From sequence record NC_009760.1: 64,000 bases of DNA, one strand, 5' to 3'. Under the pieces are notes generated by a model. That model was not told where the DNA came from and did not search any database. It saw nothing but the letters and a program-made list of their open reading frames with translations. Positions 1,774 through 64,000 of this stretch are shown in pieces. Both the position numbers and the translations under genes were made by a program. The number at the start of each line of letters is the position of its first letter. Position 1 is the first letter of the stretch.

Positions 1774-3530
1774 TATTTGTTGTAGTACGGTTGCAGACAC
1801 ATACGCCAGTGTTTATCGTTTAGGTTCTTGTTACCTGCTTCAATCATAAGTTGTATTACATCTGTGTTCGGAGCGCCACCAATAAAGGTAAAATCCTGTA
1901 TACCACGTTCTTGAATGTAATCACCTAATGACCACGGCAACTTCGCTGCTTCGAACTGCTTATGATAATTCAGCATCGGCTGATTGCGAAGACCAGCAAC
2001 AACCGAACCGCAATAACAATCTGACCAGTGTGCATCTGTTGAAACATAAATACCATTACTGTAATTTGTTTGTACTGCTTTATGGAACTCCACGGCTGAA
2101 CGGTTTCTGTCAGGTGCAGATAGTCGCTCCGGATTCGGTAAGTTCCATTCTACATTCTGACCGACATACCTTTCAATACCAACGATGATAGATGCTTTGA
2201 ATCTACCAGCCATAGCCTTTGTATAGTCGGTTAATGTACCTTGACGGGTTAATATGATTGGTGTACGTGTTTGAGCAGCGTACGAGGCAATGCCGTACGT
2301 CATAAGATGTTCCTCGCCATTTACAACGAGTACCTTCTTCTCACCTGTACCAAACCATGTGGATACATTCCCTGATAGTTCATACCGATCATTCCCGTTA
2401 ATGCGGTCTACCTGTAGTCCCATTGCACGAAGCTCTGCTTCTACGTTACCGCCGATTGACCACTTTGTTCCTACGACAATGGCACGATTTGCGCCAAGTC
2501 TACGTATCTCATTCTTGATTGGCGTTGGTACGCCGTCATATGGTACAGGGAATAGTGGCCCATTAACGGTAGCGGCAAGTGGTACGGCACATAACATTTC
2601 AGGAGAACCTTGCTCGCCTTCCGGTCTAACACGACGCTTCTCAAGTACATCGTACTCTAGAGAAAGCATAGTTGGTAAATCGACTACGCCGTCCTCACGC
2701 TGAATGTTAAATGGATTACTACCACGACGTTGCTTCGCTTGGTATAACCATACGGCTACCTTCGTCGCAATATCGAAACGACCATTTACCATTAGACCAG
2801 CTTCAAGGTTACGCTTTGTAATGTCACCAACCCAGCGACCTTGCATGTCGTCACCTTCACCGCACATCTCATTAAACATCTTCACGCCAAGCAGTGGCCC
2901 CGAACCATACTTACCATCGTACTGAATACTACCGTCAGGTGAACCCATCCATAGACCAAACAATCCGCCCGGATATTTATCTAAGCGTTTCTGTAAGTCG
3001 ATTTCCCATTGACTGCGGTAATCATAACGACCACCACCGATTGTTTGATGGATACGATAACCATATGCAGATTCAGGAGCATAACGTAAACAGATATACC
3101 ATTCTCCCGACCAACGTCCAATGGCACGATTCATCCACGGATTCGTGAATACAGCGTCCGGCATAATTCTATCCCAAACACCTGCGTCACCTTGATAGTA
3201 TTTGTTCCAGTTAAACTTGATTGGATCCCAACCCATTCCCACTTCACGAAGACGTTGTTGTAATTGTCGTATCGCTGTTGTTTGCGGTGCTTCAATACAA
3301 CGTGGGTCTAGGTTCTGAAATTCAGGGCCATCCCAATCCGTTTGTCCAATGTGTAAGTTAAGCGGCCAGTGAAATTCTTTATGCACATACACATCTGTTA
3401 CTTGCTCTTGTGGTTGGGGTAATTGAAGCGGTGCAAGTACGACTGTACCTGTTCCGCCACCCCAGTGATGCCGTGATACAGCAGCAGCCGTTTCATATAC
3501 ATCGGCTCCACTCACAACTTGAAATCCCAT
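1773..3530 (-). CDS. Cell-wall-binding repeat 2 (CWB2) protein with an inserted peptidoglycan-binding-like domain
   Basis: CWB2-like units (SGADVYETA, RINGNDRYELS, RLSAPDRNRSA, TPIILT, FTFIGG); internal NGRFDIATKVAVWLYQ..DGVVDLPT resembles PG_binding_1. Confidence 0.65.
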   Translation of the reverse strand: MGFQVVSGADVYETAAAVSRHHWGGGTGTVVLAPLQLPQPQEQVTDVYVHKEFHWPLNLHIGQTDWDGPEFQNLDPRCIEAPQTTAIRQLQQRLREVGMGWDPIKFNWNKYYQGDAGVWDRIMPDAVFTNPWMNRAIGRWSGEWYICLRYAPESAYGYRIHQTIGGGRYDYRSQWEIDLQKRLDKYPGGLFGLWMGSPDGSIQYDGKYGSGPLLGVKMFNEMCGEGDDMQGRWVGDITKRNLEAGLMVNGRFDIATKVAVWLYQAKQRRGSNPFNIQREDGVVDLPTMLSLEYDVLEKRRVRPEGEQGSPEMLCAVPLAATVNGPLFPVPYDGVPTPIKNEIRRLGANRAIVVGTKWSIGGNVEAELRAMGLQVDRINGNDRYELSGNVSTWFGTGEKKVLVVNGEEHLMTYGIASYAAQTRTPIILTRQGTLTDYTKAMAGRFKASIIVGIERYVGQNVEWNLPNPERLSAPDRNRSAVEFHKAVQTNYSNGIYVSTDAHWSDCYCGSVVAGLRNQPMLNYHKQFEAAKLPWSLGDYIQERGIQDFTFIGGAPNTDVIQLMIEAGNKNLNDKHWRMCLQPYYNK

Positions 3531-57758: not shown

Positions 57759-57787
57759 TAGTATTACCATTTGAAATACTCTTATGC
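57759..57787 (-). promoter_or_regulatory. SigmaF/G-type promoter, copy e
   Basis: GCATA-N14-GGTAATACTA containing AGTATTTC-AAATG-GTAATA. Confidence 0.6.
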
Positions 57788-58210
57788 ATGTTGTGGTAAA
57801 TAATTCTCATGCTCCGCCATGACCTGCTGACGGTACTTGCTATGTGGCTTAAACCAAACATCATAGACCATCTTTCTAAGTCTCCGGTCACCGAATAACC
57901 GTGCTGGTGGTACTGGTCGTTTCTCGTCGATATACATTGTTACTAATGTTCTGTCACGATTATCCACGACAATGTTCCATTCGTGATAATATCGTACTTC
58001 GGTGTGTTCTGTATCGCCGGGTCTACCGTAGATTGAGAACAACAGCATGTAGTTCGCTCGTTTTGTTAACTCTGCGCTACCTACCTTCTGAAATCTTTTA
58101 CGTGCTTGTTTCTTTTTCGTAGCCTCTGCCATACGTTGACGGAAGCGGTCTTCAAAGTGTTCACTTGCTTCGTAATACGTTGTTTGATAGTAGTACCGTC
58201 TTTTTACCAT
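57782..58210 (-). CDS. Basic hypothetical protein, possible RelE/BECR-fold RNase
   Basis: SEHFEDRFRQR at the N-terminus and WNIVVDNRDRTLVTMY at the C-terminus; start refined to MVKRRY. Confidence 0.4.
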   Translation of the reverse strand: MVKRRYYYQTTYYEASEHFEDRFRQRMAEATKKKQARKRFQKVGSAELTKRANYMLLFSIYGRPGDTEHTEVRYYHEWNIVVDNRDRTLVTMYIDEKRPVPPARLFGDRRLRKMVYDVWFKPHSKYRQQVMAEHENYLPQHA

Positions 58211-58238
58211 ATCTCTCACCTCCTCTATAGTATAAAGC

Positions 58239-58267
58239 AAAAGACACGGCATAAGTCACCGTGTCTT
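58239..58267 (-). terminator. Terminator closing the non-coding locus
   Basis: AAGACACGG..CCGTGTCTTTT. Confidence 0.7.
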
Positions 58268-58556
58268 GCTGTAAGCGAGGAATAAGTTATCGAACCATCC
58301 TCATTATAACATCGTGAAATACTGTATAACAGGTACAATATTTTACAATATCATACGTTTTTATCCATCAACCGAATAACCGTATCCTCCGTTCTGTTCG
58401 CGACCATACTAGGATTCCTCGAATTATTATGTATCAGAAATGGGTACACGATAAACCAACCCTTGTTACCCATTAGGATGAGCCAATCTAAAAAGGGCGA
58501 AAAGCAAATGCTCATTCAATACACGATACGCTCATATACTCAATGAGAATTTGATA

Positions 58557-58673
58557 TAGTGCAACGGGCAGGATTCGAACCTGCGACTTTCTGTATACTC
58601 CGGTGACCTCTGTCATGAGCAGTAGTGACCCATCTCCGTATACAGACTGTTTTACCCCTAAACTACCGGAAGC
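58557..58673 (-). ncRNA. tRNA-like RNA with a 49-nt element in place of the anticodon loop
   Basis: D arm GTTT/AAAC, canonical T arm GCAGG-TTCGAAT-CCTGC, extended stem TCTGTATAC/GTATACAGA, poorly paired acceptor stem, no CCA. Confidence 0.6.
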
Positions 58674-58813
58674 ATGGAGAAGAGATACTATGCAGTGCAT
58701 CCCTTCAACAGTGTGTAAAATTTACATAACGATGAATCGGTTAAAGTCATCGTGACATTTTAGCGAGCCTATCGGTTAAATATGGCTCTTGTGGTGGGCT
58801 TTGCCCATGATAT

Positions 58814-58840
58814 AAAAAGGAGAGGATATTTCACCTCTCC
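58814..58840 (-). terminator. Internal terminator in the non-coding locus
   Basis: GGAGAGG-TGAAATAT-CCTCTCC followed by TTTTT. Confidence 0.65.
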
Positions 58841-59116
58841 GCTCCGAGTCATGTGATCCTATACAAATAACTCATAAGACTAAACTAACAATAATCGTAG
58901 AACCCAATACCAATAATAACCTATAGATAGAGACTAACACTTTGAAACCAATTAATATTTTTAGCTAATTAGACCATTGAAAATTAATGAGATACAAAAA
59001 ACATAGCCAACATATCAAGGCAGGTGTGATTTGCTTTGGAGATAGAAATTTAGGCGGGCATTACGCCCATAGGAGGGAACACACGCAGGACTCCCCAGTT
59101 CTCGTGCATTCGCCTT

Positions 59117-59193
59117 TAGGTCATCATGTAAGGTTTCGAACCCCATTCTCTGACATTGTTAGGTCAGCGCTTTACCTATTAAGCTACGATGAC
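59117..59193 (-). tRNA. Aberrant tRNA/pseudo-tRNA (8-nt anticodon loop CTAACAAT)
   Basis: Acceptor GTCATCG/TGATGAC, D stem GCTT/AAGC, anticodon stem CTGAC/GTCAG, T loop TTCGAAA; 2 extra nt before the acceptor 3' strand; ends CCTA. Confidence 0.6.
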
Positions 59194-59254
59194 ATGAACT
59201 CCGGTTACCCGGAGAACAATATAAATCAGTTTTTGTGTATGTAACGGTAACCTT

Positions 59255-59283
59255 ATTATATAAGGCTTATGTCACAATTGCAA
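59255..59283 (-). promoter_or_regulatory. SigmaA promoter driving the non-coding locus
   Basis: TTGCAA-N17-TATAAT. Confidence 0.75.
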
Positions 59284-59299
59284 CACCTTTTTGTAACAT

Positions 59300-60046
59300 T
59301 TATTTATTATGATGATACTCATAATATGGTGTACGTGAACCAGCAATAAAGAAGTTCAAATACGGATCAGGTGTAAGTTCTGCATCCTGCGTCGCACGTC
59401 GTACTTTCATACTCGTACCACAATCATGACAGTTTACTTCTTTGACACCTTCAGGTACGAAATGATTTGCTTCTGTTTTACAACGATTGTTTGGACACTT
59501 GTAGCGTACTTTATATCGCTTCGTGCCGTCACTATCTATTTTGAATCCTGTCTTCGATGGATCGTTCTCTTCTACGACAGGTTCTTCCTTCTTATTCATA
59601 GCAGCCTTCATGCGTTCACCGATTGTTGTACCGAAACCATTTGATTCTTCGTGTACCACTTCTAATGAATCATGTTTCTTGTTTTCTGCTATCGGATTAA
59701 ACGGCTCATATGATTCTGCTATTTCTCTAGCGGCTCTTAGTGCTTGTGGTGGTATATGTTGCACGGGTAAATCAACATCAATATCAGGCATCGTTTGTCG
59801 CTTACTCACACGTTGTGATGGTGATACATATTCCACCTGCATACCCTTCTCTACAATCGTAGGGTCTGAATCACCTAATAGCTTACTGAAATCCATGATA
59901 GGTCGTTCTGCTTGTGCAAATTGGAATGCGTGCATCAATGCTTTCTCTACTGCAAATTGTTTTAGTTGATCGCTTGGATTCGGAATCTCAAGTTTAATCT
60001 CCGGCTCCGATTTAATATGTAGCTTCATTTTCTCTACTGTGTCCAT
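59300..60046 (-). CDS. Hypothetical protein with a C-terminal zinc ribbon
   Basis: CPNNRC...CHDCG; start refined to MDTVEK. Confidence 0.6.
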   Translation of the reverse strand: MDTVEKMKLHIKSEPEIKLEIPNPSDQLKQFAVEKALMHAFQFAQAERPIMDFSKLLGDSDPTIVEKGMQVEYVSPSQRVSKRQTMPDIDVDLPVQHIPPQALRAAREIAESYEPFNPIAENKKHDSLEVVHEESNGFGTTIGERMKAAMNKKEEPVVEENDPSKTGFKIDSDGTKRYKVRYKCPNNRCKTEANHFVPEGVKEVNCHDCGTSMKVRRATQDAELTPDPYLNFFIAGSRTPYYEYHHNK

Positions 60047-60862: not shown

Positions 60863-62524
60863 TTAAGGCTGTGCGTTTGGATCCGGTTGAGCATCGAATT
60901 TAGAATCATCTTCTACTAAGTTAAAGATTTGCTTCGCATTCACTGGGTCTAAGTCAGCAATAGAGGATAGTGTAATGATTTGGTCACTAAACTTCTCTAC
61001 TGTTGCACGAGATGCGCCACCGTCTAAGTTGATTAAGACAGTTAACACATTGAACTGCAATTGCTCTTTTTTCTTCTTAAATTCTTTCAACCACTCATCT
61101 GTGATACCGCAATCGCCATCGGTGATAAATACAATGTCACCTTTCTTATAGCGGTCACTTTCTAGACAACGAATAGATTCATCTAATACCGGCATGAATG
61201 TTGTACCACCGCTACTATCTAACTCTGCAATGTCCATGATGTCGTCAGGATCCAACTCACCGGCTGGTATGTTTTTAACATGACTTGCTACAATCTGATG
61301 CTGATACGGAATGTATCCGAAGTTACGCTTCTCTTTCTGCGCGACTTCTAACATCGCTAATGTAAGTGCAGTTGACCAGTCATCCTTGTTTCCTCTCATC
61401 GAACCCGATTTATCATGGTCTATGATAATGGGGCCACGACCAACTTTCTTTATACCATCTTTCTTGTATAACTGTAGTTGTTTCTCGGAGAACTCTTTCA
61501 TGAATTGGTTACGTGTTGCTGGACTTGCTAACTTCATTAGTGACGTTGGCGTAACACGAGATAAATCATTTCCTGTTTCGATTGTACGAACAGAGTGACC
61601 ATCTGGTGTACGCTGCGTCTTCTTCTGCAAGGCAATAGCTTTCATGCGACCAACTAGGTCTGTTAAATTATTAAGGCGTGGACTGCGACGAATACGTTCA
61701 ATTGCCTTCTTACGTCGGTCAATCGAGATACGCATCGTACTAGACGTACCATCCAAGCCCCATGATTCCATTGTGTCACGGACTTCACGAACTTCTTCAA
61801 ACGCCTTCTTCGACGCTTGTTCCATTGCTTGTTCCATGCCTTGCTTCATTTCTTCCTGACCTGATTTGTTTAGGTCAATTTCATCTTCTAGATCTTGTAT
61901 TTGCTGTTGCAAGCGTGCTAGTTCCTCGGCTTCTCTTTGTGTTAAACCTTTACCGCCGGGGCCACCCTTTTCATTTAATTCATCGACACGGTTCTGTGCA
62001 TCTCGTGCCTTGTTTAATTGGTCAATCAACTCACCAGCGTCACCGCCGTCTTGCTTTTCACCAGTTTGTTGCTGTTGTATATACTGCTGTTTGAAATACT
62101 GGATTTTCTCCATTGCCTGATTCTGCATAACTTCTGTACCAATGGCACTGTTCATCACATCAAACTTTGTATTCTTACGAAGCTGGTCATACTGCTCTGA
62201 CTCCATCAGTCCTTCCATCATTTGATGGTTTAACCGAGAGAAGGCATCCATGTCCTCTTCGTCGTGCATACGTGCTTTGTAGCTGAACAAACTTTGGTAA
62301 ATATCTTCTGACAGGTTACCGAAAGGAGCATACTCGTCTAAACCACTTTGCATGTTCTCTTGCATAACCTCGTACTGATCTACCGTGTCATGAAATAACT
62401 CACGGTCAAATTCCGTCATCTTGATACTATTCTTATGCTTCTGTAACGGGTCAATGTCCTTTTTCAATCCTAACGTTTCTTGTACTAAGTTACCCTCATT
62501 ACGTTTTCTACGTCCCCAGCTCAT
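60863..62524 (-). CDS. VWA-domain protein (ViaA/CoxE-like)
   Basis: MIDAS-like DHDKSGSM, SSGGTTF, DIVFITDG; ETGNDLSRVTP. Confidence 0.85.
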   Translation of the reverse strand: MSWGRRKRNEGNLVQETLGLKKDIDPLQKHKNSIKMTEFDRELFHDTVDQYEVMQENMQSGLDEYAPFGNLSEDIYQSLFSYKARMHDEEDMDAFSRLNHQMMEGLMESEQYDQLRKNTKFDVMNSAIGTEVMQNQAMEKIQYFKQQYIQQQQTGEKQDGGDAGELIDQLNKARDAQNRVDELNEKGGPGGKGLTQREAEELARLQQQIQDLEDEIDLNKSGQEEMKQGMEQAMEQASKKAFEEVREVRDTMESWGLDGTSSTMRISIDRRKKAIERIRRSPRLNNLTDLVGRMKAIALQKKTQRTPDGHSVRTIETGNDLSRVTPTSLMKLASPATRNQFMKEFSEKQLQLYKKDGIKKVGRGPIIIDHDKSGSMRGNKDDWSTALTLAMLEVAQKEKRNFGYIPYQHQIVASHVKNIPAGELDPDDIMDIAELDSSGGTTFMPVLDESIRCLESDRYKKGDIVFITDGDCGITDEWLKEFKKKKEQLQFNVLTVLINLDGGASRATVEKFSDQIITLSSIADLDPVNAKQIFNLVEDDSKFDAQPDPNAQP

Positions 62525-62778
62525 TTCGCTACCTCTTTCAAGTTCGTTTCTTTTTCAATTGATATTTTAATGAGTTCTTTGTCTTTGTTACGATACTGAA
62601 TGTATCCTTCATCTGTATCTGTTAATGATGTAGCTTCGACATCAGTCTCCGTTTTCAGAGCAGCTACGATGATGTTTAAGACATGTTCTGCATTAAACCC
62701 ACTGATATGTGTAAAGAAGAACTTCTTGTACTTTGTGACTGTTGAAATTCGATAAGGATGCAATTGGTTTTCGTCCAT
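62521..62778 (-). CDS. Small hypothetical protein
   Basis: GGGAGG RBS; lies between the AAA and VWA genes. Confidence 0.55.
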   Translation of the reverse strand: MDENQLHPYRISTVTKYKKFFFTHISGFNAEHVLNIIVAALKTETDVEATSLTDTDEGYIQYRNKDKELIKISIEKETNLKEVAK

Positions 62779-62869
62779 TGTATAGCCTCCCTAGTTAGAA
62801 TCAGGAGAAGGCGCTAAGTTCCATAAGTCTCTTAGTTGCTTCTCCATAAATTCACTTACATTTAATTTC

Positions 62870-64000
62870 TTATCCCCACTGCCGAGAAGACTTGCGGTTC
62901 GTTTGACGTAAGCATGTAGTAGAGATTTCATTTACGATTTCTTCTACTTTTACTAAGTACGCATCTAACTTATCAAGTTCTGCGTCAGATGCGCCGTTAC
63001 GTTCTGCTTCTTTGATTTCATCAGACATCTTATCTAACATTTCGGATAGAGAAGAATTTGTTTGAACAGCAGTTCCGGCACGCTCTGTGCGGTTCTCAAT
63101 TTCCATTGTAGACTTCTTCAATTCTTCCGCTTTCTTCACGAACTCTTTCATCTTCGATTCATGCGGATTCATATACTTGCCTAACTCTTTATCAAGAATT
63201 TCTAGCTCCTTGCGGTCTTTGTTCCAAAGTACGTTACGTAGTGCCATGAAGTCACTACCATTTACTGTGTCACGACCTTCTAATAGAGCATTAGCCATCA
63301 TGATAAGCTGTGCTTTGTAATAACGTCGGTCAGAGATAACCATGTTATTAGTGCCTAATGTACGTACTAAACGCTCGAAGTCTTTCGCAATACGAGCAGG
63401 GAAATCAACCATATGTACCGCTTGTTGCAGTAAGTCGATTTCATCTAACGTGATTGTTGTTTTCGGTAAGATACCTTTCTTCTTCGATGCACGACCTGCT
63501 GTAACCATTTTGATACGGTTCTGTGGGTCTTGGATATATTCAATCCAGTGACGGAACATGAATCGGTCATAGAACGCCTCTAATCCTTCGTCCTCCGGAT
63601 ATTCATTTGACGCACCCATAACGATACGTAATTCAACTGGTACAGCTTTCCCATCGTTATAGAAGATACCTTCATTCAGCATAGATAACAGATAGTTCAG
63701 TGACGGTTCATTCGATTTGAAAATCTCATCAAGGAAACCGACATGTGCTTCTGGCAACTTGCCTGTTGTGATACGTAAGAACTTATCGTTCTCCATACCT
63801 TTTACGGAATACGGGCCAACTAAATCCGCTGGGTCAGTTGTACGGTTCATTAACCATTTGAATGTGCGAGCCTTTTCAACGTGACTTGAGAATAAATCAG
63901 CAAGCATCGACTTACCTGTTCCCGGAGGCCCTAAGAATAGAATGTTTTCTCCTGCAATTAATGCACGAAGAATATCTTTAATTACATGCTCACGTTCGAA
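62870..64000 (-). CDS. MoxR/RavA-family AAA+ ATPase (5' end outside window)
   Basis: Frame is open to 64000: FEREHVIKDILRALIAGENILFLGPPGTGKS, then FLDEIFKS, GASNE, FYDRF, SDRR. Confidence 0.9.
   Translation of the reverse strand, partial: FEREHVIKDILRALIAGENILFLGPPGTGKSMLADLFSSHVEKARTFKWLMNRTTDPADLVGPYSVKGMENDKFLRITTGKLPEAHVGFLDEIFKSNEPSLNYLLSMLNEGIFYNDGKAVPVELRIVMGASNEYPEDEGLEAFYDRFMFRHWIEYIQDPQNRIKMVTAGRASKKKGILPKTTITLDEIDLLQQAVHMVDFPARIAKDFERLVRTLGTNNMVISDRRYYKAQLIMMANALLEGRDTVNGSDFMALRNVLWNKDRKELEILDKELGKYMNPHESKMKEFVKKAEELKKSTMEIENRTERAGTAVQTNSSLSEMLDKMSDEIKEAERNGASDAELDKLDAYLVKVEEIVNEISTTCLRQTNRKSSRQWG

Follow-up and report, generated by a model that had tools for sequence, protein, structure and literature searches.

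Does a gene with the outline of a tRNA, in which a long structured insert takes the place of the anticodon loop, encode a broken tRNA, a tRNA with an intron, or an RNA that is maintained for some other role? The gene in question, here called T1, lies in a window (the whole stretch of DNA analysed) of 64,000 nucleotides, which corresponds to bases 124001-188000 of the record of the Bacillus jumbo phage 0305phi8-36 (EF583821 / NC_009760). The existence of T1 is already known. GenBank carries a misc_feature at 182560-182673 (minus strand) described as a tRNAscan-SE "intron-containing Arg-tRNA" with a Cove score of 22.4, along with a second feature, 560 nt upstream of T1, described as "pseudo tRNA, Cove 30.20, anticodon AAC", and the 2007 paper of Hardies et al. 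refers to T1 as a "tRNA-like sequence of unclear significance". What is new here is the proposal, which we hold to be probable, that T1 encodes a structured RNA of tRNA shape that does not decode, is maintained by selection and sits on a gain-and-loss cassette.

Read 5' to 3' on the minus strand, T1 is composed of an acceptor-like stem, a D arm, an extended anticodon arm, a variable loop, a T arm and a discriminator A, with the following positions in the window.

58560..58673, minus strand: tRNA-shaped RNA T1 (114 nt), matched by the Rfam tRNA model and by ARAGORN with introns allowed, and present as a GenBank misc_feature; body invariant in 14 other contigs
58649..58663, minus strand: D arm, 4-bp stem, loop AGGGGUA with the GG elbow nucleotides (Rfam, sequence reading, pair counts)
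58638..58646, minus strand: 5' strand of the 9-bp stem, UCUGUAUAC, made up of the 5-bp anticodon stem and a 4-bp extension (sequence reading)
58599..58637, minus strand: 39-nt insert within the 9-bp stem (alignments and variant list)
58606..58626, minus strand: apical 7-bp helix, 58620-58626 with 58606-58612 (compensatory pairs, permutation test)
58613-58619, minus strand: invariant 7-nt apical loop CUCAUGA, which caps the 7-bp helix
58590..58598, minus strand: 3' strand of the 9-bp stem, GUAUACAGA (sequence reading, pair counts)
58568..58584, minus strand: T arm GCAGG-UUCGAAU-CCUGC, consensus (Rfam, sequence reading, pair counts)

The Rfam tRNA model (RF00005) matches 58565-58668 (minus strand) at 30.5 bits against a gathering score of 29, and together with the D arm and canonical T arm, which can be read directly from the letters, this bears out the initial annotation of a real tRNA-like element. 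The alignment covers model positions 5-66 only, with the outer acceptor outside it, and the features of the RF00005 family that are present in T1 are the D and T arms with their elbow nucleotides. The retained core thus comprises the D arm, T arm, elbow nucleotides, a variable loop of 5 nt and the 5-bp anticodon stem, the two halves of which are separated by 47 nt in the Rfam alignment. The initial annotation had correctly described a 9-bp extended stem enclosing the 39-nt string at 58599-58637, and had given the insert as 49 nt, a figure to be corrected to 47 nt if counted between the halves of the canonical stem, or to 39 nt if counted within the 9-bp stem. As a whole, the lengthened anticodon arm forms an irregular hairpin of ~57 nt that runs from the 9-bp stem through an internal loop, a 3-bp helix, a second internal loop and the 7-bp helix to CUCAUGA. 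This loop is built like an anticodon loop, with U in second place followed by CAU and a purine. It is the sole 7-nt loop of the anticodon arm and is set ~14 bp farther out from the core than a true anticodon; a 7-nt anticodon loop on the 5-bp stem is absent. The AGA and GAG bulges flanking a 3-bp helix, also proposed initially, can be drawn in the arm, but that fold is neither the minimum-energy one nor the one supported by covariation.

The acceptor stem is irregular, as the initial annotation had noted. In the ARAGORN register 4 of the 7 positions required of an acceptor stem are Watson-Crick pairs, the others being U.U, U.U and C/C (in order G-C, C-G, U.U, U.U, C-G, C/C, G-C), and an extra base precedes the D stem; in the Rfam register there are 3 Watson-Crick pairs and 1 G.U. 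CCA is likewise confirmed as not encoded, with CUA coming after the discriminator A58560. With default settings ARAGORN makes no call at T1, and with introns allowed it reports Thr-AGU and places an intron of 40 nt at position 34/35, so the gene-finder check suggested at the outset gave a positive Rfam match and calls that depend on an intron and disagree on the anticodon. The ARAGORN tmRNA mode found no tmRNA, in agreement with the initial view that T1 is not one, and within 58200-59350 the Rfam intron, ribozyme, Y_RNA and YrlA models gave no match at E up to 10. The cloverleaf (-27.3 kcal/mol) lies 3.8 above the minimum-energy fold (-31.1 kcal/mol), and the folding stability of T1 is no better than that of shuffled sequence (z = -0.05). 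A hammerhead-like reading of CUCAUGA and GAAA was rejected, as by eye it fails at the essential G5 and no Rfam ribozyme matches. For a spurious 62-aa ORF that lies over T1, no protein homologues were found.

Among phage records, blastn returned 0305phi8-36 itself alone, and exact-pattern scans of viral contigs and genome contigs with a 19-mer of the D arm and a 29-mer of the insert returned nothing; outside the phage family, no T1 homologue was found in phage records, IMG/VR or the species genomes. A run index pointed to near-identical sequence in samples from food fermentations, sediment, soil and elsewhere. We recovered relatives from public assemblies through the exact gp60 protein and members of its cluster, which gave loci L246-L263 on phage contigs of ~211 kb (L250 being the reference copy), and L278 came from a later lookup. 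T1 is carried by 14 contigs besides the reference (15 copies in all), with a tRNA body that is identical in every one, and is cleanly absent from two loci, L248 and L261; identity or near-identity in 14 other contigs is more than chance would give. Inside T1, only two sites vary in the contigs of four runs, both among copies with insert allele A: 58639, where A is replaced by G in the RNA and an A-U pair in the extended stem becomes G-U, and 58588 in the variable loop. The 0305phi8-36 family itself is much larger than published: many public runs contain contigs of whole-genome size (~211 kb). One of the relatives (P0046 and P0079, Paenibacillus sp. EC2-1, 206.5 kb) has been deposited as a plasmid, a hint that it may exist as a phage-plasmid or in a carrier state.

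These relatives allow T1 to be compared with its surroundings. Between L246 and L278, T1 shows 0/114 differences, against 36/79 upstream, 50/345 in the downstream intergenic stretch and 98/430 (23%) in the gp60 coding sequence, and the gp60 protein of the L278 phage is only 76% identical. The reference and L246, on the other hand, differ at 4/430 positions of gp60 and yet carry different insert alleles, which indicates that the alleles move between lineages. This pattern of identity calls for purifying selection, recent cassette exchange, or both, and the perfect identity across divergent phages could in part reflect recent lateral exchange of the cassette as opposed to selection on every base.

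Structural selection is visible in the insert, which occurs as two alleles that differ at 13/39 positions on an identical body, its 3' part CACCGGA being invariant. When the fold was predicted from the reference allele alone and the other allele then fitted to it, three pairs proved to be compensatory (A-U to U-A, U.G to A-U and U-A to G-C) and two were broken. The three pairs lie in the 7-bp apical helix and account for six of the 13 allele differences; with 13 substitutions placed at random, three or more compensatory pairs arise with P ~0.0045 (permutation). A slightly re-registered model of the arm has 88.6% of cells paired as compared to 33-46% in slid controls, with compensatory change in 3/7 apical pairs and one mismatch per allele in that helix, and the 9-bp stem is paired 100% across all alleles, its single change being the one from A-U to G-U at 58639. 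The homologue search for covariation that the initial annotation had recommended thus bore fruit, and the compensatory changes argue for selection on structure as part of the explanation. As there are only two insert alleles, the covariation rests on a single divergence event.

T1 is not the sole irregular tRNA-like gene in this family. A companion, T2, lies upstream of it, and more distant relatives, found through gp60 homologues with 46-62% identity, have others; coordinates with an L prefix refer to the contigs of relatives.

59119..59194, minus strand: companion tRNA-like T2 with an 8-nt anticodon loop, CUAACAAU (Rfam 36 bits; ARAGORN)
58819..58840, minus strand: terminator-like hairpin between T2 and T1, conserved in relatives
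L276:3296-3370: aberrant tRNA-like of 67 nt with a 6-nt loop, upstream of a gp60 homologue
L279:315-403: T2-like tRNA-like with an enlarged loop, upstream of a gp60 homologue
L269:1109-1195 and ~1215-1290: long-variable-arm tRNA with an odd loop (in L269-L271), the L269 loop containing UCCUGCAA
L266: ~3060-3150: aberrant tRNA-like upstream of a gp60 homologue

The T2 loop reads CUAACGAU in L248, and across 7 distinct sequences 147/147 of its pair cells are paired, including an anticodon-stem series that passes from U-A through U.G to C-G. Since all of its stem substitutions keep pairing, T2 too is under structural selection, and it might have a four-base anticodon or a role other than decoding. 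Alignment of the T1 and T2 cassettes revealed no common flanking motif beyond the tRNA features. In L256 a 192-nt insertion (L256:1463-1654) follows directly after T1, flanked by the 7-nt direct repeat ACTATCA, and its fold contains an acceptor-like stem of 7 bp along with a T-arm-like hairpin; it is absent among the Rfam matches of that stretch at E up to 1, and is a third tRNA-like cassette. The presence of aberrant tRNA-like genes near the same locus in relatives shows that the family keeps a variable array in which the anticodon regions are systematically non-canonical.

Downstream of T1, the nearest gene is one annotated as hypothetical.

57782..58210, minus strand: gp60, immediately downstream of T1, with a predicted RelE/ParE/colicin D-like fold

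Pfam and PHROGs are uninformative for gp59-gp61, and gp60 has no family match in either. Its AlphaFold2 model (pLDDT 86.5) has as its best structural match in VIA-align the colicin D tRNase domain (Z 6.1), and 50/50 of the matches listed are RelE/ParE-type toxins, RelE-like ribonucleases, or colicin D/E5 and CdiA nuclease domains; clusters of DUF4258 are found among the AlphaFold DB matches of the model, and the family alignment shows conserved His and Arg residues. The Foldseek E-values for gp60 are weak, and a Z below 8 can reflect a common arrangement, which together make the fold assignment tentative and leave it silent on activity. Within the leader of gp60 (58235-58310, minus strand), an extended -10 (TGTTATAAT) is followed by a hairpin whose loop reads GGUUCGAU and then by UUACAGCAA, and a strong terminator-like hairpin stands immediately ahead of the ribosome-binding site (fold z = -3); the leaders of relatives retain the arrangement of CAAGAC and terminator, and the leader might act as an attenuator or yield a small RNA. 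Further along, gp63 (vWA) and gp66 (bpMoxR AAA+) form a NorD/NorQ-like pair (60863-63907, minus strand) that is conserved across the phage family. The model of gp63 (pLDDT 78.5) has a long-helix domain and a vWA domain, and homologues of this protein occur in many bacteria and in Moorella phage MTATph1, whose homologue has an ATPase gene as its neighbour.

If T1 moves between phages, then its identity might be a consequence of that movement, and its function, if any, might go no further than transcript punctuation. In such an account T1 would be a cassette for recombination or mobility, or else a processing signal acting in cis, conserved through recent lateral exchange. We consider this unlikely, and the evidence for exchange is set out with the extent of the cassette.

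58548..58715, minus strand: presence/absence cassette containing T1, approximate extent (contig of run X1; L248 and L261)

A contig from one metatranscriptomic run (X1) joins 58547 to 58716 with the whole of T1 missing, and the breakpoints of presence and absence thus fall at the ends of T1. Moreover, the T1 allele departs from the gp60 phylogeny, the third tRNA-like of L256 is inserted exactly at the 3' end of T1 with its flanking 7-nt direct repeat, and T2 is likewise skipped in one contig. However, punctuation needs no long arm, and the pairing of the arm survives three double substitutions; no transposase or homing endonuclease adjoins T1, and mobility is in any case compatible with function. 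As a separate observation, the intergenic block at 58343-58554, downstream of T1, shows ~8% substitutions together with 1-nt indels among otherwise near-identical strains, and the boundary of this variable block lies within a few bases of the T1 3' end.

A decaying pseudogene is quite improbable. Here T1 would be a former tRNA, Arg-like in its 3' half, that was disrupted by an insertion and now drifts neutrally, and its mismatched acceptor, missing CCA and lack of a usable anticodon loop are what such decay should leave behind, as are its low scores (Cove 22.4 in GenBank, 30.5 bits in Rfam), its lack of excess folding stability and its dispensability, being missing from some strains. The ancestry of the body is mixed: 77/94 called tRNAs among the metagenome matches of a D-arm 17-mer are tRNA-Gly, 82/106 genome-scan matches of a 23-mer spanning the variable loop and T arm are tRNA-Arg, and two Bacillales tRNA-Arg(UCU) genes have 25 consecutive bases in common with the 3' half of T1. 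Both scans returned ordinary tRNAs, mostly Gly in the metagenome scan and mostly Arg in the genome scan. A D arm of tRNA-Gly type with a T arm of tRNA-Arg type suggests that the body is tRNA-derived, yet chimeric or diverged. Neutral drift is at odds with the 0/114 differences in T1 between phages with flanks that differ by 14-46%, and with a body that is invariant in 15/15 copies while the insert shows compensatory pairs; the acceptor mismatches are themselves invariant in all copies. The initial annotation had named a lack of structural conservation in relatives as the mark of a decaying pseudogene, and what the relatives display instead is strong conservation of structure.

Splicing of T1 is very unlikely. 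The initial annotation had offered a protein-spliced mini-intron as one possibility, and two gene finders model T1 in this manner, as a decoding tRNA (Arg-ACG in tRNAscan-SE, Thr-AGU in ARAGORN) from which a 40-nt insert is spliced out; conserved exons with a fast-evolving, structure-keeping insert are also the mode in which tRNA introns evolve. But the two programs disagree on splice sites and anticodon, the tRNAscan-SE anticodon being ACG, GCG or ACA depending on the allele, and the cuts proposed by both fall within a perfect helix and none in bulges. A direct repeat, CGGAG, flanks the insert, so that a 40-nt piece could be excised equally well in several registers. A bulge-helix-bulge with both cuts positioned to give a 7-nt loop is absent, and the version with a 3-bp helix leaves a loop of ~20 nt; in the phage, PF01974, PF01139 and PF09414 (EndA, RtcB and RNA ligase) gave no match in searches whose controls worked. 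Furthermore, an insert of 40 nt is too short for a group I intron, as had been noted initially (the catalytic core takes at least 200 nt, and there is no Rfam match), ribozyme families are likewise unmatched, and the acceptor stem is defective. As a point in favour of transcription, the T1 locus is found in contigs of a metatranscriptomic run, in which depth differs several-fold between adjacent contigs, and the insert-less joint is absent from this run, a weak point given that contigs drop rare forms; the same holds for the contigs of four runs, none of which has a joint that removes just the insert.

The remaining proposal, that T1 is the tRNA-shaped, Y-RNA-like partner of a Ro60-like protein, is suggested by the vWA protein gp63 2 kb from T1, by the hairpin followed by UUACAGCAA in the gp60 leader and by UCCUGCAA as the loop of the tRNA-like in L269-L271, and we regard it as extremely improbable because TROVE (PF05731) and DUF2828 (PF11443) are unmatched in the phage genome, gp63 homologues have VWA_2 and VWA_CoxE alone, the gp63 model matches vWA domains (among them NorD from the NorQ-NorD pair) rather than Ro60, the CNGCA(A) motif is absent from the T1 insert and from T2 and is found once, in the gp60 leader, the Y_RNA and YrlA models are unmatched, and MoxR-vWA homologues in other phages, including the gp63 relatives in Moorella phage MTATph1 and one gut contig, have no tRNA-like nearby.

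Taken together, T1 is best read as an accessory tRNA mimic that is dispensable and forms one cassette within a variable array of aberrant tRNA-like genes. On balance we expect that the phage does encode a small RNA here, shaped like a tRNA but non-decoding, and that selection maintains it. One of the two possibilities offered in the initial annotation was likewise a tRNA mimic that keeps the elbow and does not decode, and this idea fits the invariant arms and elbow, the displaced 7-nt loop, the irregular acceptor and the compensatory changes in the arm. As candidate roles for such a mimic it had named a decoy for anticodon nucleases and a ligand of a T-box, RNase P or a synthetase. That the region is dispensable follows from natural strains without T1 and from a viable deletion (181,412-189,531, ~eight kb) reported in 2012, in which both tRNA-likes, the MoxR and vWA genes and others are lost with a growth defect only (PMC3357382). 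We envisage that T1 RNA would derive from the gp61-gp60 intergenic transcription unit, and that its tRNA core would confer tRNA-like folding and stability and possibly tRNA-type processing, similar to the tRNA scaffold chimeras, although the poor acceptor stem makes processing by RNase P or RNase Z uncertain. T1 might then occupy a protein that recognizes the tRNA shape, with the long arm supplying specificity, and so act as a mimic or decoy and not as an adaptor in translation; candidate targets would be a host tRNA-directed nuclease or the adjacent gp60.

At present we can only speculate, from the predicted fold, that gp60 is the partner of T1, although a nuclease directed at tRNA would make sense as the neighbour of tRNA mimics. 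In the specific form in which T1, perhaps with T2 and the other aberrant tRNA-likes of the family, would be the RNA partner of gp60, with gp60 as a nuclease that attacks tRNA and the RNA as its tRNA-mimic inhibitor or decoy, we consider the idea a long shot. If true, the pair would amount to a phage-borne analogue of an RNA antitoxin, or to a means by which the phage is spared while host tRNAs are cut. More generally, pseudo-tRNA calls are abundant in phage genomes and are usually ignored, and the natural strains with and without T1 make the question of its role directly testable. By its invariant core and compensatory long arm, T1 would join the growing number of tRNA-shaped, non-decoding RNAs of phages.

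How does T1 compare with systems that are already known? With canonical tRNA (RF00005) it shares the D arm, the elbow, the 5-bp anticodon stem, the 5-nt variable loop and a consensus T arm, and it differs in having 47 nt and not 7 between the halves of the anticodon stem, three acceptor mismatches, an extra junction base, no CCA, and a Gly-type D arm combined with an Arg-type T arm. Similar to the bulge-helix-bulge pre-tRNAs of archaea and eukaryotes, T1 has a long helix on its anticodon stem, conserved tRNA parts and a variable insert that keeps its structure; however, it has neither the 3-4-3 motif nor two cut sites that would yield a loop of 7 nt, its phage lacks a splicing endonuclease and a ligase, and it occurs in a bacterial host. 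YrlA and Y RNAs, which associate with Ro60/Rsr, also join a tRNA-like module to a long helix and are non-decoding tRNA mimics. YrlA is circularly permuted and ends in its long helix, whereas T1 ends at its acceptor, its arm lacks CNGCA(A) and the phage has no TROVE or DUF2828 gene. The species 1 and 2 RNAs of the phage T4 tRNA cluster are small, stable and dispensable, with partial tRNA-like features; they and T1 are both dispensable small RNAs, and their architecture is different.

Finally, the Ponchon and Dardel chimeras establish that a tRNA body can have its anticodon stem-loop replaced by an insert and still be processed and remain stable in bacteria (PMC3753655). Like these engineered tRNA scaffolds, T1 keeps the acceptor, D and T arms and has a hairpin-closed insert in place of the anticodon stem-loop; unlike them it is natural and phage-encoded and has an imperfect acceptor. 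Should the target of T1 turn out to be a tRNA-recognizing nuclease or defence protein, T1 would represent a natural use of the tRNA scaffold principle in the conflict between phage and host.
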